In this document: piece after piece, positions 5,787-57,540 of the stretch
How positions within the stretch are numbered: the first letter of the stretch is position 1
How the letters are laid out: the number at the start of each line of letters is the position of its first letter
Source: Mustelus asterias
Lineage: Eukaryota
Assembly (NCBI RefSeq): GCF_964213995.1
Contig: NC_135817.1
Coordinates: forward strand, 70,804,001-70,868,000
DNA: 64,000 nucleotides
Direction of reading: 5' to 3'
Notes under the pieces: model-generated
The model's input: only the letters and a program-made list of their open reading frames with translations
Database searches by the model: none
Told to the model about the DNA's origin: nothing
Translations under genes and position numbers: made by a program

Positions 5787-5853
5787 ATGCTGGGCAAAAT
5801 GTCTTTGTTCATTAATTGTTTTACCAAGTGGATTGTCCTCATGGTTTCACTAG
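5787..5853 (+). CDS. IgSF V-C1 receptor exon 1 (signal peptide MLGKMSLFINCFTKWIVLMVSLG)
   Basis: ATG 5787, hydrophobic leader, strong donor AG|gtaagg at 5854, phase 1, in frame with the V exon. Confidence 0.7.
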
Positions 5854-6262
5854 GTAAGGATACTTTCTCTATTTCTGACAATATGAGTGAAGTTGAGAGA
5901 ATATCTGTGCAATAGTTTTAAGTTGCTGCTGGCACTGATAGTTATCTTCCTATCATCAAAGTCGGTGGCTTGCAAAGATTTTTGTTTTTGGTCAAGTACT
6001 CAGGTGGCATAAATATCATATTCGTTTCACAGAGATCCAAGTGAGTTGAAAAGGAATCTGTCATGAGTTTGAAAGGAAATTGCACGTTGCATTTGGGTGC
6101 AGAAAATATATATTGTGCTGCAGCTAGTAAGGCAGCAGTATTAATTTTATCAATCTTACTTCCCACTATCTATGAGATTTTTCATGTCATTTTAACCAAA
6201 AATCAATTAAAATTCAGAAACCTTTGTTCTAAATCTTCCACATTGCTGCATAGTGAATGTAT

Positions 6263-8338
6263 TTTCAAGGAACAAATACTGGGTGTCGTTGATAGGTATG
6301 TCCCTGTCAGGCAGGGAGGAAATGGCCGAGTGAGGGAACCATGGTTCACGAAAGAGGTGGAATGTCTTGTGAAAAGGAAGAGGGAAGCTTATGTAGGGAT
6401 GAGGAAACAAGGTTCAGATGGCTCGATTGAGGGTTACAAGTTAGCAAGGAACGAGCTGAAAAATGGGCTTAGGAGAGCTAGGAGTGGACATGAGAAGTCC
6501 TTGGCGGGTCGGATCAAGGAAAACCCCAAGGCTTTTTACTCCTATGTGAGGAATAAAAGAATGACCAGGGTGAGGTTAGGGCCGGTCAAGGACAGTAGTG
6601 GGGACTTGTGTATGGAGTCAGTAGAGATAGGCGAGGTGATGAATGAATACTTTTCTTCAGTGTTCACCAAGGAGAGGGGCCATGTTTTTGAGGAAGAGAA
6701 GGTGTTACAGGCTAATAGGCTGGAGGAAATAGATGTTCAGAGGGAGGATGACCTGGCAGTTTTGAATAAACTGAAGGTCGATAAGTCCCCTGGGCCTGAT
6801 GAAATATATCCTAGGATTCTTTGGGAAGCAAGGGATGAGATTGCAGAGCCTTTGGCTTTGATCTTTGGGTCCTCACTGTCCACGGGGATGGTGCCAGAGG
6901 ACTGGAGAATGGCGAATGTTGTTCCTCTGTTTAAGAAAGGGAATAGAAATGACCCTGGTAATTATAGACCGGTTAGTCTTACTTCGGTGGTTGGTAAATT
7001 GATGGAAAAGGTCCTTAGGGATGGGATTTACGACCATTTAGGAAGATGCGGATTAATCCGGGATAGTCAGCACAGATTCATGAAGGGCAAGTCGTGCCTC
7101 ACAAATTTGATGGAATTTTTTTGAGGAGGTAACTAAGTGTGTTGATGAAGGTAGGGCAGTTGATGTCATATACATGGATTTTAGTAAGGCGTTTGATAAG
7201 GTCCCCCATGGTCGGCTTATGATGAAAGTGAGGAGGTGTGGGATAGAGGGAAAGTTGGCCGATTGGATAGGTAACTGGCTGTCTGATCGAAGACAGAGGG
7301 TGGTGGTGGATGGAAAATTTTCAGATTGGAGGCAGGTTGCTAGCGGAGTGCCGCAGGGATCAGTGCTTGGTCCTCTGCTCTTTGTGGTTTTTATTAATGA
7401 CTTAGAGGAGAGGGCTGAAGGGTGGATCAGTAAATTTGCTGATGACACCAAGATTGGTGGAGTAGTGGATGAGATGGAGGGCTGTTGTAGGCTGCAAAGA
7501 GACATAGATAGGATGCAAAGCTGGGCTGAAAAATGGCAAATGGAGTTTAACCCTGATAAATGTGAGGTGATTCATTTTGGTAGGACTAATTTAAATGTGG
7601 ATTACAGGGTCAAAGGTAGGGTTCTGAAGACTGTGGAGGAACAGAGAGATCTTGGGGTCCATATCCACAGATCTCTAAAGGTTGCCACTCAAGTGGATAG
7701 AGCTGTGAAGAAGGCCTATAGTGTGTTAGCTTTTATTAACAGGAGGTTGGAGTTTAAGAGCCGTGGGGTTATGCTGCAACTGTACAGGACCTTGGTGTGA
7801 CCACATTTGGAATATTGTGTGCAGTTCTGGTCACCTCACTATAAGAAGGATGTGGAAGCGCTGGAAAGAGTGCAGAGGAGATTAACCAGGATGCTGCCTG
7901 GTTTGGAGGGTAGGTCTTATGAGGAATGGTTGAGGGAGCTAGGACTGTTCTCTCTGGAGCGGAGGAGGCTGAGGGGAGACTTAATAGAGGTTTATAAAAT
8001 GATGAAGGGGATAGATAGAGTGAACGTTCAAAGACTATTTCCTCGGGTGGATGGAGCTATTACAAGGGGGCATAACTATAGGGTTCGTGGTGGGAGATAT
8101 AGGAAGGATATCAGAGGTAGGTTCTTTACGCAGAGAGTGGTTGGGGTGTGGAATGGACTGCCTGCAGTGATAGTGGAGTCAGACACTTTAGGAACATTTA
8201 AGCGGTTATTGGATAGGCACATGGAGCACACCAGGATGATAGGGAGTGGGATAGCTTGATCTTGGTTTCAGATAAAGCTCGGCACAACATCGTGTGCCGA
8301 GGGGCCTGTTCTGTGCTGTACTGTTCTATGTTCTATGT
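6263..8338 (+). mobile_element. 5'-truncated CR1/HER1 LINE in intron 1 (frameshift and stop)
   Basis: ORFs 6063-7124, 7174-7800 and 7807-8259 give KSPGPD, NYRPVSLTS, DFSKAFD, FADD; tail ttctatgttctatg. Confidence 0.95.
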
Positions 8339-8500
8339 ATCCTCACTGTTAGCAAGGTAATACATGCCTTTGAAGCAGGCACTTCCATCATTTTACATAC
8401 CTTAAAACTCTTCTATGCAAACAATGCATCATTACTGTTAGTAGGCTACCGAGGACAGTAAGAGACATAGGCCAACCAATAGACAATATGTTGGCATTTT

Positions 8501-9112
8501 AAAGTTTATTTATTAGTGTCACAGGTAGGCTTACATTAATGCTGCAATGAAGTTACGGTGAAAATCACCTAGTCACCACACTCCGACGCCTGTTCACGTA
8601 CTCTGAGGGAGAATTTAGCACGGCCAATGCACCTAACCAGCACATCTTTCAGACTATGTGAGGAAACCAAAGCACCCAGAGGAAACTCTTGGGTGGCACA
8701 GTGGTTAACGCTGCTGCCTCACAGCACCAGGGAACCAGGTTCGATTCCCATCTTGGGTCCCTGTCTATACAGAGTCTGCACGTTCTCCCCGTGTCTGCAT
8801 GGGTTTCCTCTGGGTGCTCCGGTTTCCTCCCACAGTTCAAAGACGTGCTGGTTTGGTGAATTGGCCATGCTCAATTCTCCCTCAGTGTGCCCCGAACAGG
8901 CGCCAGAGTGTGGCGACTAGGGGATTTTCACAGTAACTTCATTGAAGTGTGAACGTAAGCCTACTTGTGACTAATAAATAAACTTTTGCTTTTCTTTAAG
9001 GCAGGGAGTGAATGTGCAGACTCTGACAGACAGTGACCCAAGCCAGGAATCGAACTCAGGTCCCTGGCGCTGTGGGGCAGCAGTGTTAACCACCGTGCCA
9101 CCGTGCCACCCC
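8501..9112 (-). mobile_element. HE1-like SINE (tail B) with a second copy (about 8691-8998, + strand) nested in opposite orientation
   Basis: Minus-strand SINE split at about 8690/9000 by a plus-strand copy with A/B-box head. Confidence 0.85.
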
Positions 9113-9518
9113 AGGCATTTAAGCAGGACCATGAAGGTATTGGAACCTGAGAAATATCCTAATCTGTTGTTGTGCTGACAACGATCTCAGTGATGCACTC
9201 TCAATCTAGCCCATTTTATTGGAAAGACATTAAACTGTCACTGAACCAGACAAGGATATTATAAACATCTTGTGACAAAGCACATTGATATTACAAACCT
9301 CTTGGTCTTTCAAATGGCTATTTCAAATCCCACAATTAACTTGCATGATTAAAGTAAACAGCGATATGTTTTTCCATGACAGATTTTTAATTGATTGGCC
9401 AAGATTTCATACCTTGATTGCATTCTTCCCGGAATCAAATCTTGATTAAAAGTGGAAGAAAAATGAAGGCAACTTATGCTGACCTGCAGAACCCTTGCTC
9501 ATTAAGGATGATCATTTC

Positions 9519-9805
9519 AAAGTTTATTTATTAGTCACAAGTAGGCTTACATTAACACTGCAATGAAGTTACTGTGAAAATCCCCTAGTCGCCACAATCC
9601 GGCGCCTGTTCAGGTACACAGAGGGAGAATTTAGCATGACCAATTCACCTAACCTGCACACCTTTGGCCTGTGGGAGGAAACTGGAGCACCCGGAGGAAA
9701 CCCGCGCAGACACGGGGAGAATGTGCAAACTCCGCACAGACAGTGACCCAAGCCGGGAATCGAACCCAGGCCCCTGGCGTTGTGAGGTAGCAGTGCTAAT
9801 CACTG
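9519..9805 (-). mobile_element. HE1-like SINE (tail B)
   Basis: tRNA-derived head, V-SINE core and tail B. Confidence 0.9.
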
Positions 9806-9912
9806 TTCAATCATAATTTTAAAGCCCTGTCTTTGATGAATAGGTGGATTCACAGAGAGATATTTCAAATAGTTTTTAACTAACAGTGCTAATTTATTTT
9901 GATTTTTCACAG

Positions 9913-10290
9913 GAACAGTTTTGACACATGGTGAAGACCAAGTTTCCCAAACCCCAGCAGTACTCAGAGCATTCAAGGGAGAAAGCGCGACAATCACTTG
10001 TTCCTACTGGTACCATCACTTTCAGGTAGAATTAATGTCTGTCTCCTGGTGGCGGGATATGTGGAAAGTGCCTGTGTGTAGAGTATATTACATGAATGAT
10101 ACACTGATACAGAGTCCTGGGTGTGATAGACGAGCGAGCATTACTTTGGAGATCAACGCTGCGGTTACACACTTTACCATCCAAGATCTCCAACTGAATG
10201 ACACAGACCTTTATTACTGTATGATTCAATTTTCTGTACCACCACCTACCAAAGAATTACATGGAAACAAAACAAGCCTCACAGTAGAAG
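9913..10290 (+). CDS. IgSF V-C1 receptor exon 2: VJ-type V domain, CD28/CTLA-4-like
   Basis: Acceptor tttttcacag|, donor AG|gtatga, phase 1-1; ATITC, VSWWR, DTDLYYC, second Cys pair (PVC...SPGC), FG-loop SVPPPT, G-strand HGNKTSLTV. Confidence 0.92.
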
Positions 10291-10377
10291 GTATGAATTA
10301 AAATCTTAAGTATGCCTGTAAATATATAATATACAGTATATCAATATACTAATGCATTTGGTAACAAAAATCTGTTG

Positions 10378-10810
10378 TTTGATTTGATTTATTATTATCA
10401 CATGTATTAACATACAGTGAAAAGTATTGTTTCTTGCGTGCTATACAGACAAAGCATACCTTTCATAGAGAAGGAAACGAGAGAGTGCAGAATGTAGTGT
10501 TACAGTCATAGCTAGGGTGTAGAGAAAGATCAACTTTATGCAAGGTAAGTCTATTCAAAAGTCTGACAGCAGCAGTGAAGAAGCTGTTCTTGAGTTGTTG
10601 AGGGTACGTGACCTCAGACTTTTGTATCTTTTTCCCGACGGAAGAAGGTGGAAGAGAGAATGTCCGGGGTGTGTGGGGTCCTTAATTATGCTGGCTGCTT
10701 TTCCGAGGCAGCGGGAAGTGTAGACAGAAGCTGGTTTGCGTGGTGGATTGGGCTACATTCACGACGTTTTGTAATTTGTTGCGGTCTTGGACAGAGCAGG
10801 AGCCATACCA
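10378..10810 (-). mobile_element. Rex1/Babar-type LINE 3' fragment
   Basis: Minus strand encodes a decayed C-terminus (LKNSF...AAVRLLN; cf. RTNRLKNSFFPAAVRLLN in the 44848 copy); tail (ATCAA)n. Confidence 0.65.
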
Positions 10811-11029
10811 AATCAAATGTTGTACATCAACTGGACAGAAACTAGTTTGAATTATAAACATCTTTGTGTAGAATTTTTTTTTAGATTACCATCTCCATAA
10901 AAACCAACATGTATGCCTATGTGTTATTGAATCAATGTGGAGCATTTAATTGAGAGATCAGCATCACTATATACACAATTCTTTTAAAAATCAAAATTTA
11001 GTAAAGCTTGTTACATTTCCTTTCCCAAG

Positions 11030-11338
11030 CTCCTCCAACGGTGGAAGTTAAAATTCTTGCCTGGCCTGAAAGTGGGTGTTGCATACAACTTGTTTGCAGA
11101 GCAGAGAACTTCTACCCTGGCAACATCCAACTGAGGTGGGGTAAAGAAGGAAAAGAAGGTTCGGTATGGATTCAGTCCGGTATCACTGTTACCGCAAACT
11201 ACAGCAATCTCAGAACAAGTTATGTCAACCTCTCTCACTGGGAGAACGGGGATGTATATTCATGTCACGTGAATCACTCCATGTTGCAAACCCCTATCGT
11301 TAGGAATCTCACCATATCGTTTAATGAACAGCATGAAG
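11030..11338 (+). CDS. IgSF V-C1 receptor exon 3: C1-set domain
   Basis: Acceptor ctttcccaag|, donor AG|gtattt, phase 1-1; LVCRAENFYPGNIQLRW and YSCHVNHSML are C1-set signatures. Confidence 0.9.
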
Positions 11339-12343
11339 GTATTTACAGCTTTACAGTTTTCGTCCCTTTCTTCACTTTAAAACCACTCTTTGTTTCCTTT
11401 TAACTGGAAAATGAAATTGTCTCGGTACTTTCAAGGTTCATTCTACATTCCCACTCTTTGTTTGTACTTAGAAAAAAATTGCAGGTTTAATAAATAAACC
11501 TGATATCTCTTGTATTTAAAACTTACTGCTTTGATCGTTGTGGACATGAAAAGCTCAGACATAGCAGAAGACCTTTTCACTAAAATATTGATAACCTGCT
11601 GCTATTCCCTCTGATTGCTCAGGCTAAAACTGCAAGTTAAGTTTATTTTTTATGAATTACGCTTATCCACAATCACAAAAAAATTAAGAAACCAATATGG
11701 GAATCTCAACCTCCCATGCCTATCCGGCAATTAAATGCCATTGGAGAACTCTCCCATTCCCGTGACTCGGGTTGAGGTAAAATTACGTCACCTTAAACTG
11801 GAAGTTAGTGGGGAGCCTGCCCCAAGAACAAGAAACTGGGCTGAAGACTGGAAAGGGTTTTCCAGGTCCCACCAGGTAAGTGTGCAGACCTCACCTGCCT
11901 CAAATTACACTCTTCGCAAATCATTCACCGCTTTCTCCCCTCCGCACAAAGGGACACCTACCCTAAGCCTTGTTCTGCCTTATCCTTCACAAATTCCCAC
12001 GGACTTACGGGCAATATCCCATCAACCATGTTTATAAACCTCAGGCCTATTCCCAACCAGATTTCATGCAGTCTTTGGTTATCCAGCAGTTAACTGAAAT
12101 TGTACTAGCTGTTTTACTTGAAATATTCTGAATATATTCTGAAACCTTGCTTGATGCTTGATAGCTTTATGCTCAATTAATGCTTCTCCAACACAGTTAT
12201 TTTCATGTTCTTTTCCGGACTAATCTAAACAAGAACAGTAAAACTTATTTGATTTGGGGAGAAATGTATTATATCGGTTATCAGATGATCTGATATTGTT
12301 GAAGCCGTTAATTCAAAGGCCTTCTTGTTTTTTTTTGTTGTAG

Positions 12344-12433
12344 ACAGGATGTATATATGGGTGGTGCTCGTTTCGTTGTGTGTAATTCTAGTAACGGGGC
12401 TCATCTATTTACTATTGAAGTGTTCAAGAAAAG
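12344..12433 (+). CDS. IgSF V-C1 receptor exon 4: transmembrane (DRMYIWVVLVSLCVILVTGLIYLLLKCSRK)
   Basis: Poly-T acceptor ttttgttgtag|, donor AG|gtaaga, phase 1-1, 23-residue hydrophobic helix followed by basic residues. Confidence 0.85.
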
Positions 12434-12824
12434 GTAAGATCCAGATTATTTTAAAAGATCAAAGTTGAAGTTTGTAGATAGCTTTTAATTGATATATGTG
12501 GAAGTAGAGTCGGTATTACTGTTTGCGCAACTTAATCCAGGTTCCTGTAGGTGGATCCAACAAGGCACTGAATTGAGTAAGTGCACTTCCACAGCCAGCT
12601 TACAGGATAACTGTGTCACTTGTATAATTGATAGCATGGTGTAGTGGGTCACAACACTGTCTTTTCATGTTTTAAACCAATTTTGTCATCTCAGTTCCAA
12701 CTGGATATGACCCCACAGTATGAGACTGCCCTTTGACATTCAGAGAGAGAGTGGACAGAATGTCTGGTGTAGGAATTGGAAGATGTCACAATGGGGCAGT
12801 GGGCGTATTCATGTGACACTGGGT

Positions 12825-13598
12825 TAAGAACATAAGAAACATAAGAAATAGGAGCAGGAGTAGGCCATCTAGCCCCTCGAGCCTGCCCCGCCATTCAATA
12901 AGATCATGGCTGATCTGACGTGGATCAGTACCACTTACCCGCCTGATCCCCATAACCCTTAATTCCCTTACCGATCAGGAATCCATCCATCCGCGCTTTA
13001 AACATATTCAGCGAGGTAGCCTCCACCACCTCAGTGGGCAGAGAATTCCAGAGATTCACCACCCTCTGGGAGAAGAAGTTCCTCCTCAACTCTGTCTTAA
13101 ACCGACCCCCCTTTATTTTGAGGCTGTGTCCTCTAGTTTTAACTTCCTTACTAAGTGGAAAGAATCTCTCCACCTCCACCCTATCCAGCCCCCGCATTAT
13201 CTTATAAGTCTCCATAAGATCCCCCCTCATCCTTCTAAACTCCAACGAGTACAAACCCAATCTCCTCAGCCTCTCCTCATAATCCAAACCCCTCATCTCC
13301 GGTATCAACCTGGTGAACCTTCTCTGCACTCCCTCCAATGCCAATATATCCTTCCTCATATAAGGGGACCAATACTGCACACAGTATTCCAGCTGCGGCC
13401 TCACCAATGCCCTGTACAGGTGCATCAAGACATCCCTGCTTTTATATTCTATCCCCCTCGCGATATAGGCCAACATCCCATTTGCCTTCTTGATCACCTG
13501 TTGTACCTGCAGACTGGGCTTTTGCGTCTCATGCACAAGGACCCCCAGGTCCCTTTGCACGGTAGCATGTTTTAATTTGTTTCCATTGAGATAGTAAT
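12825..13598 (-). mobile_element. Young CR1 LINE 3' fragment in intron 4
   Basis: Open 226-aa RT C-terminus (ORF 12925-13605) plus intact 3' tail. Confidence 0.93.
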
Positions 13599-13743
13599 GG
13601 AACAAGCAGTGTAGAGCCTGACTTGTTCAGCGTATCCTAGCTTATAAACCTTTTAGGACTGAGGTGAGGAGAAATTTCTTCACCCAGAGGGTGGTGAATG
13701 TGTGGAATTCACTCCCACAGAATGTAGTTGAGGCCAAAACATA

Positions 13744-14272
13744 GGGGATATTTTACCATTTTGATTCTAAGTGCTGAATCTGGGCGCAATTCAGATCCGA
13801 CTTGGAAAACTGTTCTCAGGCGCCTCCATACGCACTTAGCCTGAAATAAAAATCGCGAGTCTGAATCGCGCTGTGGGCGGGGCTTATCGCCCGAAACGCT
13901 GTTGCTCCGATCGGAGCCTTCAACTGCGCATTTGAAAAACACTCCCCTGTCACACCGCTGCTGGGCTGCAAAAAGCAGATAAAGCGGCCCGGGAGCAAAA
14001 AGCAGGAGCGATGGCCCCCACAGATATCGCCCCACCCCCACAACATAACTGTCCACCTCCTGCTACCCAGACCGATCGCGACCCCCTGCCCCCCTTCCCC
14101 CCCTACCGATCGCCTGCAGAGTGGCAGCGGTCCCCCCTGCCCCTGCCCACTCACTCACCAGAGATCCATCTGACCGCCTCCCTTCCCCTCCTCCGCCCCC
14201 CACCAGAGAACCATCCGGCCTCGCTTCTCCCCTCCCCCCCAGAGAATGATCGGGCCTCCCTCCTCCTCCCCC
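13744..14272. mobile_element. Truncated non-autonomous Harbinger-type DNA element (family of 17911-18742)
   Basis: Begins with attttaccattttgattctaagtgctg, as the 17911 copy does. Confidence 0.7.
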
Positions 14273-14874
14273 ATAAAGCTGATATCTTTAAACACCATGA
14301 GGGACTGTGCCTTCAGCTGCCTTGGCCCTTAGGTCTGGATTTCCTTTTTATTTAAAAAATAGAAGCTGGAGTAGACCATTTGGCCCTTCATAAAGCTCCT
14401 GTGAAGTGCCTTGTGACATGTTATGTTATAGGCACTGTATAAGTACAAGTTGGAACTATTGTTGGTCTGATAGTGAGTATAGTACACATTGGATGGGGTT
14501 TTCCAGCTGCGCCTGCCCCCAGACTGGAAATTCCCACCCAAGGCCAATGGATCTTTAAATGGTCCATCAAATTTTCTGGCCCGCCCGTGCCAATTCCCAT
14601 GGCGGGCAGGACAGGAAAGTTCCACCCATACGCTGCAATTCTACTGCCCCGCTGGCCACGAAATCAGAGTGGGTGAGGGGCGGACAACGGAAATGTCCAT
14701 TGACTTTGGGAAGGATTTTCCAGTCTCGCTCGAGCAAGGTCATAAGATCCCACCCGTAGAATGTGCAAGAAAAAAACTTTATATTTGTTTCATTCCTGGT
14801 ATTAACAGAAATAATCTACTTGTAAATTTATTTGCATTTGCATTAAGTAAAAACAGAAAAGTATTGAGACTACG

Positions 14875-15939
14875 TGAGCGATTCTCCCAGCCCGCTGCAG
14901 TGCAACAGGCCAGGAGACTCAAGCGGAGGCCATGTAGCGGGCTCCCCACTGGGCGCCATGGCCTCCACGCATCTCCAGCCACTGGATTTCTGGTGCCGTC
15001 AGTTCCAAAACAGAAATTGGCGCGGAGCTGTATAAATTATTCTAATGCTGATTGTAATATCATTAGTGGGCCCGGGACTGAAATCTCCAGACCAGTGAGC
15101 GTCTCTCCATCGGCCAGGAGTGTTTCACTCCAGCAGGGTTTACAACAGCTCCCCACTGACCCTGCTGAAGTCAAAGGGGGCCATGGAGGCCCCCAGAGGG
15201 TTGGGGGTTAGGGGGTGCCGTTGGCCATTGCCAGTCTTGCAGTGCCAGGAGGCCAGGCTGGCACTGCCCACCGGGCATCGGGCATTGCTAAAGGGGTGGG
15301 GCCAAAGGAGGTGGGGCATAATGGGGGCGGGGTCTCTAGGGGAAGATCAGTGTGGGTAGAGGGGGGTCCCGTTGTCACACTGTGCTCGGCGGTGACCGAG
15401 GGAGGGAGGCCAGTGATCCGGGCTGACCATTGAGCTGGGAGTGGGGTCGGCCTGTCTTGGCGGATCGAGGCTGCGTGGTGGGGGTGGGAGGGTCAAGACT
15501 GCGGGGATCGGGGCTGCCAGTGATTGGGGGCAGGGTGGATTGGGAGATCGGGACTGCCGCGGGAGCCCGGGGTGGGGGGGGAGTTGGGGGTCGGGGCTGG
15601 CCCAGGAGACATGTCCAGAAGCTGAGCGATCGGGATGTGAAGGGTCGCACGGCCAGTTCTGCGGGGTCGCGGGAATGATGGGGAGACCGGCAGTGCGGGG
15701 CTACTGCACATGTGCTGATCTCTGGTATGACAGATTGGCGCATGTGCAGTGACCCGCTCAGCGTGATGCTGCCAGCCTCTCCAGCGGGAATAGGCCCCGC
15801 CCATTGATTTTTAATGAATGCACAGTAAAGTGCACGGAGTGTGGGAGATTCATTTTGAAAACCCTGCTGGAAAAAACAGGATTTACCCCAGTTTTTACGC
15901 GAATTCGACACTTAGAATTTTTCTGGGAGTATCCCAGCC
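14875..15939. mobile_element. Non-autonomous GC-rich TIR element (family of 22482-23593, opposite orientation)
   Basis: Imperfect TIRs gattctccca...tgggagtatc; aattctaagtgtc subterminal motif shared with 22482-23593. Confidence 0.6.
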
Positions 15940-16139
15940 AATAACCTAAATCCATAGGTTGTTAAGTAGCAGTGGATAACTTCTGTGACTTATCAATCAA
16001 TCACCCATTATGGAGTATTAATTTGTGAGTATTCTGACATTGTTACCCTCAGTGTAGTAATAATTGGATCATTCTTCTTAAAGCAATTAGTTGGCAGGCA
16101 GCTGCAAATTTAAAACTGAGTTTGCAAAATTTAAAAGTA

Positions 16140-16405
16140 AAAGTCTATTTATTAGTCACAAGTAAGGCTTACATTAACACTGCAGTGAAGTTACTGTGAA
16201 ATTCCCCTAGACACCACAGTCCGGTGCCTATTTGGGTCAATGCACCTAACCAGCGCGTCTTTCAGATTGTGGGAGGGAACCAGAGCACCCGGAGGAAACC
16301 CACGCAGACACAGGGAGAATGTGCAAATTCCACACAGATAGTGACCCAAGCTGCGAATCAAACCCGGGCCCCTGGTGCTGTGAAGCAGCAGTGCTAACCA
16401 CTGTC
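16140..16405 (-). mobile_element. HE1-like SINE (tail B)
   Basis: Sequence identity with the other copies. Confidence 0.88.
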
Positions 16406-16673
16406 CTGTGTTGTTCTTGATGTGGTGGATGCGTAGTTTCTCAAATCACCAAAATGACAGATTTGTGAGCACGCTAAAATGAGAATCTCACTCACAGAAG
16501 ACAAGCTTCACACACGAGTGCAAAATGATTGGAATCCACTCTGCGAATCAGTTTGGCGTGTGCTTTCCAGCATTGTGGAAATGATGCTGGTTTCTCTGTG
16601 ACTGTATTGTCCTATAAGACGGAATAAACTAAATTACACATTCTATTTTTTACTCATATTTCTTTCATTTCAG

Positions 16674-16900
16674 CAATTCCTGAAGTTAATGAGATCTATG
16701 TTAATGTTGGCACTGGACCAAGAAATCCAGAGATTGTCTCAACACATCCGAACTCGAATCGAAAGCCAAATCGAAATCAAGGGACCGCCTCAAAGTGTCA
16801 GAACACAAATCAAAATTTAAATCGAAGTTCTAATTCTAATTATAGTTTCATTGGGCACATTCCATTGGGGATATATGAAAATACTTCCTCTGTAAAATAA
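16674..16900 (+). CDS. IgSF V-C1 receptor exon 5: cytoplasmic tail with YVNV, SNYSFI and YENT motifs, stop TAA
   Basis: Long polypyrimidine acceptor tttctttcatttcag|, phase 1, open 75 codons; five exons total 1071 nt = 356 aa plus stop. Confidence 0.8.
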
Positions 16901-17370
16901 AATGACAATCAGGAGATTTGTTATTTTGTGATTCTGCTTCATCATTTGTCCCCTCAAATCTGAACTGCTGTCAAGGAGCTGGGCTGTGGCCCATCTCTGT
17001 GGCCACTTTGTGCACAATCTCGAAAAGCTGTGAAGAGTTGTGCATAACCAAAGCAGAGATAGTCCACCAATGTGTTGCACGGTGCAACATGCAGCTTCTT
17101 GGAATTTGTACTTCACTCATACCGAGTGACTTTGTCAGAGAGCTCAAAATATTTTACTTGTGTTCACTATACCGAACATTTCCTGTAAGTTACTGAATGT
17201 TATTGCTATAATGTTTTACTTATTAGCGAACTTTTGTTCTGTTTGGAATTGCTCAATACAATATCCTACATAGCAAAGGGCACAGTTCATGCCAAGTCAT
17301 AGAAATTCTCTTGGAAATGCAGTACAGTTAAAAAGCACTCAAATAATCCATTACTATAACAACATACAAA

Positions 17371-29604: not shown

Positions 29605-31635
29605 TTTTTCATTCATTCGTGGGACATGGGCGTCGCTGGCTGGGCCAGCATTTATTGCCCATCCCTAGTTGCCCTTGAACTGAGTGGCTTGCTAGGCCAC
29701 TTCAGAGGGCGGTTGAGAGTCAACAGCATTGCTGTGGATCTGGAGTCACATGTAGGCCAGACCAGGTAAGGACGGCAGATTTCCTTCCCTAAAGGACATT
29801 AGTGAACCAGATGGGTTTTCCTGATAATCAACAATAGTTTCATAGTCATCAGCAGGTTCATAATTCCAGTTTTTTTATTGAATTCAATTCCACCAGCTGC
29901 CATGGCAGGAATCGAACCCGGGTCCCCAGAACCATAGAACCATAGAAAATTACAGCTCAGAAACAGGCCTTTTGGCCCTTCTTGTCTGTGCCGAACCATT
30001 TTATGCCTAGTCCCACTGACCTGCACTTGGACCATATCCCTCCACACCCCTCTCATCCATGAACCTGTCCAAGTTTTTCTTAAATGTTAAAAGTGACCCC
30101 GCATTTACCACTTTATCTGGCAGCTCATTCCACACTCCCACCACTCTCTGCGTGAAGAAGCCCCCCCTAATATTCCCTTTAAACTTTTCTCCTTTCACCC
30201 TTAACCCATGCCCTCTGGTTTTTTTCTCCCCTAGCTTCAGCGGAAAAAGCCTGCTTGCATTCACTCTATCTATACCCATCAAAATCTTATACACCTCTAT
30301 CAAATCTCCCCTCAATCTTCTACGCTCCAGGGAATAAAGTCCCAACCTATTCAATCTCTCTCTGTAACTCAGCTTCTCAAGTCCCGGCAACATCCTTGTG
30401 AACCTTCTCTGCACTCTTTCAATCTTATTTACATCCTTCCTGTAACTAGGTGACCAAAACTGTACACAATACTCCAAATTCGGCCTCACCAATGCCTTAT
30501 ATAACCTTACCATAACACTCCAACTTTTATACTCGATACTCCGATTTATAAAGGCCAATGTACCAAAGGCACTCTTTACGACCCTATCCACCTGTGACGT
30601 CACTGTTAGGGAATTCTGTACCTGTATTCCCAGATCCCTCTGTTCAACTGCACTCTTCAGAGTCCTACCATTTACCCTGTACGTTCTTCTTTGGTTTGTC
30701 CTTCCAAAGTGCAATATCTCACACTTGTCTGCGTTAAATTGCATTTGCCATTTTTCAGCCCATTTTTCTAGTTGGTCCAAATCCCTCTGCAAGCTTTGAA
30801 AACCTTCCTCACTGTCCACTACACCTCCAATCTTTGTATCATCAGCAAACTTGCTGATCCAATTTACCACATTATCATCCAGATCATTGATATAGATGAC
30901 AAACAACAATGGACCCAACACCGATCCCTGCGGCACACCACTAGTCACAGGCCTCCACTCAGAGAAGCAATCCTCCACAACCACTCTCTGGCTTCTTCCA
31001 TTGAGCCAGTGTCTTATCCAATTTACTACCTCCCCATGTATACCTAGCGACTGAACCTTCCTAACTAACCTCCCATGAGGGACCTTGTCAAAGGCCTTGC
31101 TGAAATCCAGGTAGACAACATCCACCGCCTTCCCTTCATCCACTTTCCTGGAAATTCCTCGAAAAACTCTCATAGATTGGTCAAACATGACCTACCACGC
31201 ACAAAGCCATGTTGACTCTCCCTAATAAGTCCCTGTCTATCCAAATATTTGTAGATCCTATCCCTTATCACACCTTCCAATAACTTGCCCACCACCGACG
31301 TCAAACTTACAGGCCGATAATTTCCCGGATTTCTTTTGGAACCTTTTTTAAACAACGGAACAACATGAGCCACCCTCCAATCATCCGGCACCTCCCCCGT
31401 GAATACTGACATTTTAAATATGTCTGCCAGGGCCCCTGCAAGTTCAACACTAGCTTCCCTCAAGGTCCGTGGGAATACCCTGTCCGGTCCTGGGGATTTA
31501 TCCACTCTGATTTGCCTCAAGACAGCGAGCACCTCCTCCCCTTTAATTGAGCACCTCCTCCCCTTTAATAGAACATTAGCTGAGTTTCTTGATTAATAGT
31601 CAAGCAATAATACCACTAGGCCATCACTTCCCCTT
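29605..31635 (-). mobile_element. tRNA-headed SINE-like element (family of 33843) split by a CR1 insertion
   Basis: Host halves 29605-29930 and 31570-31635 rejoin at ccccagaac|attagctgag. Confidence 0.75.
29930..31569 (-). mobile_element. Young 5'-truncated CR1/HER1 LINE
   Basis: ORFs 30007-31188 and 31170-31532 (one frameshift), FADD; 21-bp tandem duplication at the 5' junction. Confidence 0.95.
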
Positions 31636-38708: not shown

Positions 38709-41700
38709 TGTGGTGAACCATCGTTGGTTCACCACTGGGGTTTGTTACTATGTTACTGTTGGGCTAGGGTGTTGTTACTGTGGGGGTTGTACTATGTTGT
38801 TGGGTTAGGGTGTTTACCTGTTATAAGAGTTATCATGGCACATTCCAGTGGGGTCCCGCCTCCGGTGGCGAGGTATAAGACCCCCTGCTCCGGCAGGACT
38901 CCTTCAGTCTGAACTGGTGTATTCGTGTTAGTAGTTCCATTGTTACTTTATTAAAGCCTTCAATACCGAAGCCTTGGTTCCATGTGCTTATTGACGCGCG
39001 TCAATTTAATAAAGTAAACAGAAAACTCACAACTGTGCAACAAGAAGAAAAAAACAGAGAGTATGGAACAGATTCTAAAACCGGATCGTCTGACACTGGA
39101 CCCACGTGCGGTCGGTGCAGCTAACACATTCGACCATTGGTGGAAGTGCTTTGAGGACTACCTGGCAGCCTCGGTAGCTATCACTACGGACAGTGATAGA
39201 CTCCAGGTCCTCCACGCAAGGGTAAGCGACACGATTTACCTAGCCATTCGTGCAGCTCCCACTTACCAGGGTGCCGTCGAGCTCCTACAGAAAAGATACA
39301 CTATGCCACTCAACGAGATACACGCTCGTTACCTCCTCGCTACACGACGTCGGCAGTCGGGCGAAACCATGGAGGATTATGCCAATGAGCTCCTGCAGCT
39401 TGCCAGGGGTTGCGACTGTAAGGACGTCTCCGCCGAACAGTATATGTACGACCTCGCCCGAGACGCGTTCGTAGCAGGGGTAGGGTCCTCGTACATCAGG
39501 CTTAAATTGCTAGAAAAGGGGAAACTCAACTTAACCCAGGCAATGGAGATGGCCGTGAGGTTGGAGGCGGCGTCGAAGAGCTTGGCGCTGTACCCCGAGG
39601 ACCACGTGCAGTCAACGTGGTTGGAGCAAGCTCAGCTCCCTCCTCGCCCCGCGAACCCGCGCTCCCAGATCGATTCGACGACGGTGGCAGCTCCAGGTGG
39701 CCAGCGATGCTATTTTTGTGGAGGGGCCAAGCATCCACGGCAACAGTGTCCGGCAAGAACGGCAATCTGCAGCCAGTGCGGTAAAAAAGGCCACTACGGC
39801 AAAGTCTGCAGGTCCAAACCTAAAAACGGCAGTGCAGCTTGTAACCCTCCAGAACGGAGACCATCTCTTTCGGCGTTGCAGTACCCACGAGGTCCGACCA
39901 CGTGCGATCTCAGGACGGCGCCATCGTGGCAGACAGAGGAGGAGGAAGACCACCAGGAGTCGCTGCGCTTGGCGCCCTCGCCCACGTGCGATTCATGGGG
40001 GCGGCCATCATGGTCCACGACGACTAGGAGCGACCAGCAGGGGTCTTCAGCATCCACATCGGCAGCATGCAGTGACGCCCAGGGGCCAACGGTGGCGTCG
40101 ATCTCCCTGGATCAGACCAAGCATTACAGACTGGAACATTCTATGATGGAGGTAAAGGTTAGTGGCAGAACTGTGAATTGTCTGTTTGACAGCGGAAGCA
40201 CCGAAAGTTTCATACACCCTGAAACTGCTAAAAGGTGTGGACTCCGGATTCTCCCTGCCAAACAGACAATTTCCATGGCATCACGGTCCCGGTCTGTACC
40301 GATCCAAGGACGATGTATGGTAACTCTTGAGGTACAGGGCACAATTTACGAGCAATACAGGCTCCTTGTGCTACCTCACCTTTGCGCGCCAATTCTCCTC
40401 GGACTAAACTTTATGGTCCACATGAAGAGTGTGATCCTACAGTACGGTGGGCCACTCCCTTCACTGGCAGTAGGGAATCCGCCGCAGCCTCCAAATTGCC
40501 CAAAGCGCCCCGCGTGCAATTTATCCACCCTGAAGATCACGACACCATCCCTTTTTAAAAATCTGGTTCCTGGCTGCAAGCCCATCGCTACTAAAAGTAG
40601 GCGTTACAGCGCTGAGGACCGGATCTTTATTAGATCTGAGGTTCAGCGGCTCCTCAAGGAAGGGATCATACAGGCCAGTGCTAGTCCGTGGAGAGCGCAG
40701 GTCGTGGTAGTCAAAAGCGGGAACAAACCTCGGATGGTCATCGACTATAGTCAGACCATTAATAGATACACGCAGCTGGATGCGTATCCTCTCCCGCGCA
40801 TTTCTGATATGGTCAATCAGATTGCGCAGTACCGAGTGTTTTCTACCATAGACCTTAAGTCCGCCTACCATCAACTCCCCATCCACCCAGAGTACCGACA
40901 ATATACGGCTTTTGAGGCGGATGGTCGTCTATACCAATTCCTCAGGGTTCCATTTGGTGTCACCAATGGGGTCTCGGTCTTCCAGCGTGCTATGGACCGA
41001 ATGGTGGACCAGAACGGGTTGCGGGCTACCTTCCCGTACCTGGATAACGTCACCATCTGCGGCCATGACCAGCAGGACCACGACACGAATCTCCAACACT
41101 TTCTGCGCACTGCATCTCGCCTGAATCTGACCTATAACAGGGAGAAGTGCGTATTCCGTACGCGTAGGTTAGCCATCCTCGGATACGTGGTGGAAAACGG
41201 GGTCATTGGCCCTGATCCAGACCGTATGCGCCCACTCACTGAACTTCCCTTGCCCGCTAGCACGAAAGCACTGAGGAGATGCCTCGGGTTTTTTTCATAT
41301 TATGCACAGTGGGTCCCCAACTACGCGGACAAAGCCCGTCCGCTCATTAAGTCCACGACCTTTCCACTTACGCCGGAGGCCCAATTGGCCTTCAAGGTTT
41401 TGAAGAGCGACATCTCGAAAGCCACGATGCACGCGGTGGATGAATCCATCCCTTTCCAGGTGGAGAGTGATGCATCTGACTTCGCCCTAGCCGCCACACT
41501 AAACCAGGCAGGCAGGCCCGTCGCGTTCTTTTCCCGCACCCTTCAAGGCCCAGAAATTCGGCACTCAGCGGTGGAAAAGGAGGCTCAGGCCATTGTGGAG
41601 GCAGTCAGACACTGGCGCCATTACCTGGCAGGTAAGCGGTTCACCCTGATCACGGATCAACGATCCATGGCGTTTATGTTCAGTAACACGCAGAGGGGCA

Positions 41701-55921: not shown

Positions 55922-57540
55922 TTAGACCAACAATACAATTTTTAGATGTATAATTCTTTGTTCTTCTTCTTTCCTTCTTCGTTTCTTCTGATGTCTTTGG
56001 GGCTCTTCATCAGGGTTTCTTCTTCGATGTATACACTGGCTCCTGGCACAATTCATGTCACCATCACCTTGCAACAGACTTTTAGGCATCCAACAATGAG
56101 ACAACAGACAATTACAATTGAAATGAGTATGACCAATCCATGTAATAAGTAAGATTCCCAGGACCCCCCCACTAGCCATTCCAGCCAGTTACTTCCTTTC
56201 TTGGGTCCCTGTCTGAAGCTATCAAGTTGTTCTCTGATGCTATTGATGACCTGTGTAATGTTATAGGACTCGTCTGTGACATGGGTTATGCATTTATTGC
56301 CTATAATTGTACACACTCCCCTTGTTGTGCTAACTGATAGTCCACTGCGTATTGTGTCTGTTATGCATATAATCTCAGTTCAGCCATTTCTTGGTTGACA
56401 GCCTCCAGTGCTTTTGAAGTGCTGTTTCCCAGGACTGTTAGTCCACAAACAATATGATTCCTATTCTTTGCACTAATCACTCCTGCTGCCCCCTCCAGAG
56501 ATAAGGCTCCAAGGAACCCATATCCCAGTGAGGATCCCATTGTGCCCGGGGCTTCCCAGTCAGCGCAGAATTCTTTGCTGATAGCCTGAGTTACTATTCT
56601 CCTCCGAATATGCCCCTTTTGAGGGCACGGAACAGTCAGTGGTCTGATTGTTCCTACTGCAAAACGGTTTGGGAGGTTTGGTGTTTCTGTCATGTAAGTA
56701 CCATTGAAGAGGAATACATATCCCTTCTTAGCCCAGTAACATTTAGTGTCCCGATTATGAGTTTGTTTATATTGCCAATTGTTTGGTTTACTTGACACCC
56801 CGTTTGATCCCACCACCTGGTAAATATCAAATGGGTATGTCCATTTGTCTGAGCTTACGTGAGTTCCATTGCATTGTCCACAAATAAGCTGTCTTCCCGC
56901 AGATATATTCAGACATTTCTGTTCATCACAAGTGCAAGTAAACTGTCCCTTATTAACCCGACAATGTTGACAGACACACTGCGTCTGTACGCAGGAATCA
57001 TTCTTAGGGACCAAGGCATAGGCACATCCCCATCCCTGCCCCGTAAAACGAAGCGGATAGCTTGCATTATCTGAACAAGCTTTTCCTCCCACCTGTTGGA
57101 ACCCCCTGCACACAGGATCTGTGGGGTTTACAAGTCCCACACATCTCCCCTGTATATCTCTTTTATATTTGCCAATTTGTCCCTTACAGGGTGCATCTGA
57201 TGTATCTACTGATTATAAGTCATGAGGGGTCCACCCAGGGGTGGCGACAAATAGGGCTTCTACCGATTGTGCTAACAGGTAACATACAGTTCGATTCCTG
57301 TGTAAATGTATGTGAGCTTTGTAAAACAAGTTATCCTCCAATCCAGTCAAATTTACAGTCACGACAACGCAAAGTAGTACAGTTACATACGCGATTACAT
57401 ACATATTCGCAACAATCAAATATCAAACCTAACACTATAATTCTTATAATCTTTACAAGTTATATTATCTATCAACCCACGCGCGCCAGCCGTTCTTGCT
57501 TGCAGTCTTTGCCTGCGTTGAGGAAAGCATTTTCGTTAGT
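55922..57540 (-). pseudogene. env: Retroviral env (SU-TM), disrupted by stop and frameshifts
   Basis: Basic cleavage site HIRRR, fusion peptide GFLGALSLEGAAG, ISD-like QTQYAVDYQLAQQG, CX6C, TM LLHGLVILISIVIVCCLIV. Confidence 0.88.

Follow-up and report, generated by a model that had tools for sequence, protein, structure and literature searches.

Organisation of the gene

A gene of five exons lies on the + strand of the window, which is the whole 64-kb stretch of Mustelus asterias DNA that was analysed. Exon 1 (5787..5853, 67 nt) carries the ATG at 5787 and most of the signal peptide in a split-leader arrangement; its 3' border is a phase-1 GT donor (5854), and the leader closely resembles the one in P0120, the ortholog from Scyliorhinus canicula. 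Exon 2 (9913..10290, 378 nt) supplies the end of the leader and a V-set domain whose J-like G strand is already joined in the germline, exon 3 (11030..11338, 309 nt) a C1-set domain, and exon 4 (12344..12433, 90 nt) a short stalk, an uncharged transmembrane (TM) helix and a basic stop-transfer stretch, each of these three exons being bordered by AG and GT. Exon 5 (16674..16900) encodes the cytoplasmic tail and ends in a TAA stop codon (16898-16900), which is overlapped by an AATAAA hexamer at 16896..16901 on the + strand, a possible poly(A) signal. We took the exon borders straight from the sequence and then checked them with a script: all four junctions are phase 1 with GT-AG borders, and the open frame comprises 356 codons. 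Together with the Pfam assignments of the V-set and C1-set domains, this confirms the layout of five phase-1-linked exons (leader-V-C1-TM-CYT) put forward in the original prediction.

Exon 2 has an alternative acceptor, a second AG located 6 nt downstream, which would move its start to 9919, shorten the leader by two residues and give 354 codons; both starts are in frame and the difference is confined to the signal peptide. The start at 9919 is the better fit to the ortholog models, because it agrees with the annotated leaders of all five orthologs that have complete N-termini (P0001, P0116, P0118, P0119 and P0120). At the remaining three junctions the residues are the same as in the annotated orthologs P0118, P0120 and P0122.

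It had also been claimed that the V and J-like strands share one exon lacking an RSS, and this was upheld. The exon is open throughout, and both strands of 9700-10500 proved free of RSS in a scan for an exact heptamer, or for a heptamer with at most one mismatch together with a nonamer with at most two mismatches, at a spacing of 12 or 23 (+/-1). Rearranging Ig and TCR genes have separate V and J segments with RSS, and identity as an Ig or TCR chain was rejected on these grounds. The other ORFs in the 64-kb window are transposon ORFs only, and tblastn detected no further C1 domain in it, leaving the V and TM exons separated by a single C1 exon. Sequencing contigs of four DNA runs cover the introns as well as the exons, with no joint at any exon border. 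As read from the sequence, the gene is intact and joined in the germline (non-rearranging), and its predicted product is a type I membrane receptor.

Domains of the encoded protein

In what follows, group A denotes this gene and its unnamed ‘LOC’ orthologs, one per species, and group B denotes the linked paralogs. Exon 2 matches the Pfam V-set domain (E 3.2e-11, 43.8 bits, cut-off 26), and the AF2 model of the domain has a pLDDT of 85.6. The CD28-type motifs singled out in the original prediction, namely a second Cys pair, DLQLNDTDLYYC, a PPP loop and an NKT sequon, are all present in the exon 2 translation, alongside a C-strand Trp. The extra cysteine pair (10077..10124, + strand; codons 10077-10079 and 10122-10124, exon-peptide positions 55 and 70) is located in the C'-to-D region, as in CD28/CTLA-4; in alignment A1 conservation of its columns is 90% or higher, and of the sequences aligned there solely the chimaera group-B member is without the pair. 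The PPP triplet of the FG loop (10239..10247, + strand) lies six residues past the F-strand Cys in the pattern YxCx6PPPx5Gx, such that the V domain of the window reads YYC, six residues, PPP, five residues and G-N-K, and P109-P111 are invariant in the 12 V domains of alignment A1. The G strand is GxK/T in group A, where the second G is replaced, and full GxG in group B. A B-strand Cys that has been lost from most orthologs is present in the Mustelus asterias protein.

Exon 3 matches the Pfam C1-set domain (E 6.6e-11, 42.8 bits, cut-off 21), with a pLDDT of 85.1 for its AF2 model, and carries an extra Cys-Cys pair (11077-11082, + strand) just ahead of the B strand. The best single-domain PDB match of the C1 domain is the UrIg2 C1 (26.7 bits), the alignment with SIRP gamma spans the entire C1 exon (43.6 bits summed over two stretches), and the top 50 Foldseek matches of the predicted structure are to membrane-proximal domains of MHC class II and to the C domain of B7-H6. 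The exon 4 peptide contains a hydrophobic run without Asp, Glu, Lys or Arg. The YxxxxT dimerisation motif seen in the TM segment of CD28, CTLA-4 and some CD28X is absent both from the window, where the TM segment ends Y-L-L-L-K-C, and from the orthologs, which have K, R, C or Y at the sixth place and never T. The cytoplasmic tail of roughly 75 residues, encoded by exon 5 on the + strand, contains the tyrosine motifs YVNV (16697-16708), SNYSFI (16835-16852) and IYEN (16871-16882). Among the six complete shark ortholog tails, YxN and SNY[SC][FL]I are found in all six and the third motif, [IV]Y[EQ]N, in five.

Orthologs, paralogs and distribution

Group A orthologs, unnamed or misnamed, are found one each in eight other shark species and a chimaera. 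When 1.84 billion representatives were searched, the top match among 104 was Chiloscyllium LOC122555561 (V identity 61%), which shares the architecture and the tail motifs, and a search with the LOC122555561 protein returned nine proteins from Chiloscyllium, Rhincodon, Stegostoma, Carcharodon, Heterodontus, two Scyliorhinus species and Heptranchias. Identity to the orthologs is 59-71% in the V domain; in the C1 domain it is 67-78% to the shark orthologs and 50% to the chimaera protein P0002, which falls inside the A clade of the V tree (support 95/91). The V-set and C1-set domains lie on consecutive exons, in the orthologs likewise. The gene belongs to an unnamed family conserved among sharks, rays and chimaeras; similar V(PPP)-C1 genes are also carried by paddlefish and axolotl. 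The new lineage suggested originally is not newly seen, as the orthologs are already in GenBank as uncharacterised or misnamed models.

Group B is present in sharks, rays and a chimaera and includes forms with VIYSLL-type ITIMs and forms with an Arg in the TM segment, the C1 domains of these partner forms being identical in two species. Group A and group B records are on contigs of equal size in all seven species where both were returned, and the C. punctatum locus tags of A and B are 2799 and 2801. Because A and B share a chromosome, and because B occurs in both ITIM-tailed and TM-Arg forms, the two groups look like a conserved cluster of paired receptors.

Affinity of the V domain

Against single-V PDB chains, the V domain scored 29.6-30.0 bits with CD28, ~23.5 with CTLA-4, ~24 with TCR V and at most 22.7 per domain with antibody V. 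The best single-domain match outside the family, among the 1.84 billion representatives, was a sturgeon protein with a CD28HL1-type tail (43.9), followed by CD28X (43.1 and 41.8) and CD28HL1 (41.0 and 40.3), with true CD28 (38.8 and 36.1) and a TCR-alpha-like V (35.8) scoring lower. Profile comparison by hhalign gave, for group A, 168.7 with group B, 114.5 with CD28HL1 (120 columns), 96.9 with the TCR-like set (89 columns, ending before the FG loop and G strand) and 93.6 with CD28X, and for group B, 137.4 with CD28HL1, 129.9 with CD28X and 98.0 with the TCR-like set; the score against CD28, represented by two sequences only, was 76.4. The top 60 matches of a PDB search with the family profile comprised multi-V constructs, pIgR, JAML and a TCR alpha chain (46.4 bits), and CD28 was not among them. 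By pairwise and profile scores, the V domain resembles the CD28 family more than other named families. The proposed resemblance to CD28/CTLA-4 stands at the level of the family, but the nearest members by profile comparison are CD28HL1 and CD28X and not CD28/CTLA-4 proper. On the favoured reading the domain is of an extended CD28-family type.

Structure prediction, one of the checks proposed originally, gave a divided answer. CTLA-4 occupies Foldseek ranks 1-4 for the V model at 26-29% identity, and CTLA-4 and CD28 have the highest sequence identity among the structural matches (26-29% vs 15-23%), but the VIA-align Z-scores of the model are tied across V-set families (Siglec-15 15.9, TCR 15.4, PD-1 15.1, CD28 14.0). 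ESM Atlas neighbours of the V domain are generic V-set only, including PD-1 and CTLA-4 clusters. The V tree of 70 domains, another proposed check, joins the family to CD28+CD28X in the best tree with a node support of 31/60; its deep nodes have bootstrap values of 31-44%. The AU test did not reject a grouping of the family with TCR-like V domains (p 0.551), the constrained tree being 1.5 log-likelihood units better. Because the deep nodes are weak, the AU test permits a TCR-like affinity and the fold Z-scores are tied, kinship of the V domain with the CD28 family is not robust and is not proven, and the weak nodes and the AU result likewise fail to bear out the idea of a structural intermediate between costimulatory and antigen receptors.

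Proposed function and alternative explanations

We favour, with a probability of about 0.6, a type I membrane glycoprotein in the order signal peptide-V-C1-uncharged TM helix-tail, which belongs to group A of the paired-receptor cluster, has an extended CD28-type V domain and would signal on ligand binding. The PPP-bearing face of the V domain would bind a cell-surface ligand, plausibly of the B7 family, whilst the C1 domain would act as a stalk and perhaps, through its extra Cys-Cys, as a dimerisation module. Ligand binding would lead to phosphorylation of the tail tyrosines, upon which the two YxN motifs may recruit Grb2/GADS-type SH2 adaptors, by analogy with CD28 and CD28H, and the ITIM-like SxYxxI could recruit SHP phosphatases. 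Through ligand binding, tail phosphorylation and SH2 recruitment, the protein would modulate the activation of leukocytes, either against or together with the neighbouring TM-Arg forms.

We consider it unlikely, though the idea has something to commend it, that the family stands apart from the CD28 family as a VJ-C1 lineage of antigen-receptor-like (TCR/IgL-like) kind. The PPP loop and extra cysteines would then have arisen by convergence, and this would be just one among numerous germline VJ-C1 paired receptors in shark genomes. The AU test leaves a grouping with TCR-like V domains unrejected, a TCR alpha chain is matched by the family profile and group B has been automatically named ‘Ig kappa/lambda light chain-like’ by NCBI; the TCR-like set also scores slightly above CD28X with group A in hhalign, but that alignment omits the FG loop and G strand, and CD28HL1 aligns over more columns with a higher score. 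The top outside-family single-domain matches are all CD28-family proteins, the identity among structural matches is highest for CTLA-4/CD28, and the exact PPP spacing is invariant in the aligned V domains, all of which argue against such a lineage. A SIRP-type paired receptor, member or sister of the SIRP family and recognising a CD47-like ‘self’ ligand, is very improbable. The V-C1 ectodomain, the Tyr-motif tail and the linked TM-charged partners mirror SIRP alpha/beta logic, three relatives bear the automatic name ‘tyrosine-protein phosphatase non-receptor type substrate 1-like’ and SIRP gamma matches across the C1 exon, but there is one C1 domain and not two, and no SIRP chain is among the 60 best PDB matches of the V exon or the 50 best matches each from Foldseek and VIA; the PPP loop and extra Cys pair are not known as SIRP features.

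We find it scarcely credible that the gene has fallen silent or is decaying into a pseudogene, with its open frames as leftovers, even though many transposons surround it and none of the 23 listed sequencing runs is recorded as RNA. Exons have diverged from a related species to a similar degree as introns (about 7-10%), and an incomplete list of 23 changed codons includes 13 non-synonymous ones, which would suit decay. However, each of the five exons is open and has canonical splice sites, no stop arises from any of the 24 exon substitutions listed, and the sole exon indel in the relative, 9 nt in the C1 exon, is in frame, whereas the introns adjoining that exon have five indels of 1, 4, 2, 1 and 1 nt. 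The domain hallmarks are all intact, including the B-strand Cys lost from most orthologs, and the tail motifs are kept across shark orders.

The gene, read as a group A receptor with an extended CD28-type V domain, may bear on the relationship between immune co-receptors and antigen receptors. A more far-reaching scenario, which we regard as quite improbable, is that the V-C1 form is ancestral, that losing the C1 exon gave rise to the single-V co-receptors of CD28 type, and that the cluster is a relic in cartilaginous fishes, paddlefish and perhaps salamanders that was lost in teleosts and amniotes. The axolotl relative is made by splicing in both V-C1 and single-V forms. If the scenario were true, the cluster (A, B-ITIM and B-TM-Arg) would be a relic of co-stimulatory receptors and VJ-C1 antigen-receptor precursors as one family.

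Comparison with known systems

UrIg and UrIg2 resemble the gene in their single-exon VJ, split leader, C1-type domains and cartilaginous-fish distribution. As described in the text of PMC12227049, the C domains number 9-11 in UrIg2 and several in UrIg, and both have V domains of Ig/TCR-like type; the genes are placed there in the MHC and in the Ig/TCR complex and are confined to elasmobranchs. In contrast, this family has one C1 domain and a chimaera member. Identity with these known non-rearranging shark genes was rejected because there is one C1 exon here, the UrIg V domain is Ig/TCR-like and 9dmx_A is outside the 60 best PDB matches of the V domain. SIRP and other paired receptors share the V-C1 ectodomain and the presence of inhibitory-type and TM-charged partners in one cluster, and here the partner C1 domains are identical in two species; SIRP proteins differ in being V-C1-C1 with a SIRP-type V, and SIRP identity was rejected on the single C1 domain and the lack of V-level similarity to SIRP among the sequence and fold matches listed. 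Likeness to BTLA, included here as general background, is limited to the layout of the tail, in which a membrane-proximal Grb2-type YxN is followed by ITIM/ITSM-type tyrosines; its lone Ig domain is of a different type.

In the catalogue of nine CD28-family members (Quiniou et al. 2024, PMC11599192), membership is defined by a single V domain and no V-C1 protein is mentioned in the main text, whereas V and C1 domains are joined here. The CD28X/CTLA-4 FG-loop signature given in that text, YxCx6PPPx4/5GxG (PMC11599192), is found here with the second G replaced in group A, and the YxNx / YxxM type of Tyr motif in CD28-family tails is represented in the window by YVNV and IYEN. CD28 and CTLA-4 share with this protein a PPP loop equally far from the F-strand Cys and an extra C'-D cysteine pair, CD28 a YxN tail motif (YMNM), and they provide the best single-V PDB sequence matches and the top Foldseek matches; they have no C1 domain, CD28 lacks the C-strand Trp retained here (P0089, P0067), and their stalk cysteine and YxxxxT TM motif are missing here. 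CD28HL1 and CD28X differ in having a single V domain on a stalk in place of V and an added C1, no extra Cys pair, and other tail motifs (EYEDM in CD28X and Y[E/D]SF in CD28HL1 vs YVNV, SNYSFI and IYEN), and they are on different contigs from group A in all four species comparisons, in which the contig sizes are unequal. They are the top outside-family matches in both phmmer and hhalign. Shared features are a V-set domain in which YxC and six residues lead into an FG loop rich in P (PPP in CD28X, EIPP in chondrichthyan CD28HL1), a J-like G strand of the GxG type, a retained C-strand Trp and tail Tyr motifs.

An intact V-C1 gene in a transposon-rich window

The gene at 5787-16900 comprises five plus-strand exons. 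Exon 1 (5787-5853) starts with the ATG at 5787, encodes the leader and ends at a GT donor (sequence reading and script); exon 2 (9913-10290) encodes a V domain (Pfam V-set, E 3.2e-11) together with a J-like strand; exon 3 (11030-11338) encodes a C1 domain (Pfam C1-set, E 6.6e-11); exon 4 (12344-12433) encodes a short stalk, an uncharged hydrophobic transmembrane (TM) helix and a basic stop-transfer stretch; and exon 5 (16674-16900), which ends in the TAA at 16898-16900, encodes a cytoplasmic tail with three tyrosine motifs (YVNV, SNYSFI and IYEN). All internal borders are AG/GT, all junctions are in phase 1 and the exons sum to 356 codons by sequence reading and script; the exons were analysed singly and not as one joined model, and neither exon 4 nor exon 5 matched a Pfam family. 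Both the five-exon leader-V-C1-TM-tail model of the original prediction and its VJ-C1 architecture were therefore borne out, the FG loop and the J-like G strand being encoded in one open frame of the V exon, and no RSS-like heptamer or nonamer was found in or beside that exon. The gene is real and intact, and it does not rearrange. The exon 2 acceptor is followed 6 nt downstream by another AG (the pair falls within 9910-9919), and starting the exon at 9919 gives two leader residues fewer and reproduces the leaders of all five orthologs with complete N-termini. If the donor of the TM exon were left unused (12434-12468), 11 more codons would be read before a stop, yielding a nearly tail-less form; a similar read-through end past the TM exon is seen in P0122, a Scyliorhinus torazame gene model.

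None of the 23 sequencing runs listed is recorded as RNA. Two of them (word shares 0.23-0.24) were considered as possible exon-only sources and rejected, as their low-depth DNA contigs cover introns too. The four runs aligned to the window are DNA contigs with no joint at any exon border: one is identical to the window and probably represents the source animal, two are of low depth and from the same organism, and one comes from a related species with roughly 92% identity over 10986-12480 (its V exon is uncovered at 90% likeness). In this species the sole indel of the C1 exon is 9 nt long and in frame, the five indels of the neighbouring introns measuring 1, 4, 2, 1 and 1 nt. Among the best supported differences listed, at least 24 exon substitutions in 23 codons (10 synonymous, 13 non-synonymous) introduce no stop. 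These differences provide indirect evidence of constraint.

The 64 kb revealed no further host gene, and tblastn returned no second copy of the gene in the window. Transposon-type ORFs (6063-8259, 12925-13605, 2438-2962, 30007-31188, 39063-43100 and 56361-57140) include reverse transcriptase, an ORF of 1345 aa and an envelope-like one; the reverse-transcriptase ORFs are found in introns 1 and 4 as well as throughout the remaining window, and a Pfam search of 10 other long ORFs of the window gave reverse transcriptase, one envelope-like match and nothing else. A repeat in intron 2 (10380-10840), whose depth is enormous in each of the four DNA runs, that of the related species included, is a very high-copy SINE-like element.

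Orthologs and paralogs in cartilaginous fishes

A search with the V exon against 1.84 billion representative proteins gave 104 matches at E<=1e-3. The top match, the 'uncharacterized' Chiloscyllium plagiosum LOC122555561 (61% identity), shares the V-C1-TM architecture and all three tail motifs of the window gene, and a search with this protein returned nine proteins, which are labelled 'uncharacterized' or 'hypothetical' or are misnamed (class I antigen-like, SIRP-alpha-like, DM-beta-like). The orthologs, termed group A together with the window gene, come from Chiloscyllium, Rhincodon, Stegostoma, Carcharodon (two isoforms), Heterodontus, Scyliorhinus canicula, S. torazame and Heptranchias. 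The closest is that of S. canicula, with a V identity of 71% in alignment A1 (12 V domains) or 72% over 123 tree columns, a C1 identity of 78% and a leader that is nearly the same; the window thus belongs to a different, though related, shark. The Callorhinchus protein P0002 is nested in the group (clade support 95/91). The suggestion of a new lineage was thus not sustained, the gene being an ortholog of unnamed models that have already been deposited. The tail of the S. canicula ortholog P0120 repeats a Q/N/R-rich unit of roughly 17 residues several times in tandem between YVNV and SNYSFI, compared with a single unit in the window.

A paralogous set, group B, is 29-32% identical to the window gene in V and 31-34% in C1. 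Its 22 proteins come from sharks, sawfish, rays, skates and Callorhinchus and include the cDNA-derived RefSeq entry NP_001279395; NCBI labels these proteins light-chain-like, SIRP-like or tapasin-related-like. Group B occurs in two forms. Six proteins combine an uncharged TM with a [VA][IV]YxLL tail, which is the canonical ITIM VIYSLL in four (P0145, P0146, P0148 and P0143) and non-canonical in P0140 (AIYSLL) and P0144 (AVYHLL), where Ala occupies position -2; P0149, P0151 and P0147 have an Arg in the TM and no [VA][IV]YxLL tail. The two groups are linked, since their proteins lie on contigs of equal size in 7/7 species for which both were returned, and the C. punctatum A and B proteins carry the locus tags chiPu_0002801 and chiPu_0002799. 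Between the ITIM and TM-Arg forms of S. canicula (P0146 and P0149) and of Mustelus asterias (P0148 and P0151) the V domains differ and the C1 domains are identical, which could reflect gene conversion from one paired receptor to the other, the use of one C1 exon by two V exons, or an artefact of the gene models.

Features of the V and C1 domains

The V peptide contains three N-glycosylation sequons and four cysteines, namely one in the B strand, one in the F strand and an extra pair whose position matches that in CD28 (P0089, P0067). PPP is invariant in all 12 V domains of A1, the G strand of group A reads GxK/T in place of GxG, and no YxxxxT motif is present in the TM. The canonical B-strand Cys (9999-10001) is kept in the window, and each of the seven other group-A sequences covering the position (P0001, P0116-P0120 and P0122) has F, Y or S instead; the F-strand Cys (10218-10220 in the window) is also gone in both Scyliorhinus proteins. 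To judge from these replacements, the classical Ig disulfide seems dispensable in this family. The extra C'-D Cys pair is retained in all group-A orthologs compared. The C1 peptide has a canonical Cys pair, four sequons and an extra Cys-Cys that is specific to group A. Its best single-domain PDB sequence matches were UrIg2 C1 (26.7 bits), IgG CH3 (23.5) and Ig lambda C (20.4), and its structural model (pLDDT 85.1) lay nearest to the C domain of B7-H6 and the membrane-proximal domains of MHC class II. The domain is thus of generic C1-set type, and no specific donor can be named for it.

Affinity of the V domain

The V domain had been likened to CD28 and CTLA-4. Its likeness to the CD28 family was upheld by scores, motifs and Foldseek, but CD28HL1 and CD28X, extended members of that family, were found to be nearer than CD28 or CTLA-4 themselves. 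Among PDB single-V chains the best sequence matches were to CD28 (29.6-30.0 bits), with TCR V at about 24 and CTLA-4 at about 23.5; the PDB rows ranking higher are multi-V constructs with at most 22.7 bits per printed domain. Outside groups A and B the best single-domain score, 43.9, was that of a sturgeon protein whose tail is of CD28HL1 type, followed by CD28X of paddlefish (43.1) and zebra shark (41.8), CD28HL1 of elephant shark (41.0) and white shark (40.3), true CD28 (38.8 and 36.1) and the first TCR-like V (35.8), CD28X and CD28HL1 being assigned by the motifs EYEDM and Y[E/D]SF from the CD28-family catalogue (PMC11599192) to proteins that NCBI labels CD28-like or CTLA-4-like. The V domain carries the motif YxC-x6-PPP-x5-G, by which CD28X and CTLA-4 are characterised in the same catalogue (PMC11599192). 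Two CD28HL1-type V proteins, P0066 (white shark) and P0075 (sawshark), have an alternative TM with Lys and a short tail, which suggests that activating variants may occur in the CD28HL1 family too.

The rival placement, on the side of the TCR-like V domains, was weighed against these scores. In profile-profile comparisons group A scored 114.5 with CD28HL1 (120 columns), 93.6 with CD28X and 76.4 with CD28, and its score of 96.9 with the TCR-like set covers just 89 columns and stops before the FG loop; group B scored 137.4, 129.9 and 98.0 with CD28HL1, CD28X and the TCR-like set, respectively. Foldseek on the V model (pLDDT 85.6) ranked CTLA-4 in places 1-4 (E 7e-10, 26-29% identity), with Fab V domains next, from 1.3e-9. 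Other searches were neutral: a wide VIA-align search gave Z-scores tied across V-set families (CD28 14.0, top 15.9), both it and ESM Atlas returned generic V-set neighbours with no discrimination, and the 60 rows listed by a family-profile PDB search are multi-V chains from which the rank of CD28 is unreadable. Pfam V-set_2 ('ICOS V-set') reached its cut-off in 3/3 group-B proteins tested, in 0/2 group-A proteins and in none of the window V, paddlefish, axolotl, CD28X or CD28HL1 examples, so that, being confined to group B among the proteins tested, it is unusable as a family marker.

The V tree (70 domains) excluded isoforms and near-duplicates (P0099, P0105-P0112, P0114, P0115, P0121, P0124-P0126 and P0128) as well as matches with a best-domain score <20 bits or covering <90 query positions. 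Because a search for named CD28, CTLA-4, ICOS and PD-1 references gave just 11 proteins, mostly CD28X, it was built without V domains of CTLA-4, ICOS, CD28H proper, PD-1, NKp30, SIRP and UrIg. Support for its deep nodes was weak, groups A and B forming a node at 43/76 and joining CD28 and CD28X at 31/60, and constraining A, B and the paddlefish protein to the TCR-like side was not rejected (AU test, p 0.551); with such values the 'structural intermediate' of the original prediction is unproven. Our reading is that the V domain is probably of extended CD28-family type, nearest to CD28H-like proteins and CD28X and not to CD28/CTLA-4, as judged by similarity and motifs and not by a resolved phylogeny.

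V-C1 look-alikes were also found outside cartilaginous fishes. Paddlefish LOC121302660 (P0074) is a V(PPP)-C1-TM protein with YxN motifs that joins group A at 85/69 on a long branch. An axolotl (Ambystoma mexicanum) gene encodes V(PPP)-C1-TM with ITIMs and has a second annotated isoform lacking exactly the C1 domain, that is, a CD28-like single-V receptor (P0102/P0099); its V falls outside groups A and B.

Proposed function and relation to known receptors

The protein would be a type I glycoprotein that uses the V face carrying PPP to bind a ligand on a cell surface, the obvious candidate being a member of the B7 family. The C1 domain would raise the V domain off the membrane, and the group-A-specific Cys-Cys may form a covalent dimer. 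As the TM is uncharged, signalling would proceed via the protein's own tail, through two YxN motifs of the Grb2/GADS type, as found in CD28 and CD28H (PMC11599192), and an ITIM-like SxYxxI motif. Together with the linked ITIM and TM-Arg paralogs, the gene may form a paired-receptor cluster.

Known receptors of similar layout were considered. In UrIg and UrIg2 an Ig/TCR-like V is combined with several to eleven C domains (PMC12227049), and identity with them was rejected on C-domain number and V type. SIRPs have two C1 domains, whereas the window gene has one, and no SIRP V was among the matches listed by PDB sequence search, Foldseek or VIA-align; SIRP identity was likewise rejected. The CD28-family catalogue, the most recent of its kind, describes nine members, 'each with a single extracellular V domain', and its authors regard the origin of the family as unknown (PMC11599192). 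Its main text mentions no V-C1 member, and its supplementary sheets could list such genes (PMC11599192); searches of the literature, supplements aside, turned up no account of a CD28-like V-C1 family, and those under six accession/LOC names gave 0 papers. The present finding is best classed as a CD28-type V joined to a C1 domain, a combination that cartilaginous fishes have conserved, in gene models that are already deposited but unnamed.

Were the CD28 likeness convergent, this would still be a conserved cluster of paired receptors that lacks a name and that databases carry under mistaken labels (light chain, SIRP, tapasin-related or MHC). The family is roughly 400 million years old in cartilaginous fishes, has inhibitory, YxN-bearing and TM-charged forms as well as look-alikes in paddlefish and axolotl, and offers a concrete candidate, now opened to testing, for what links co-receptors to the VJ-C1 layout seen in antigen receptors.
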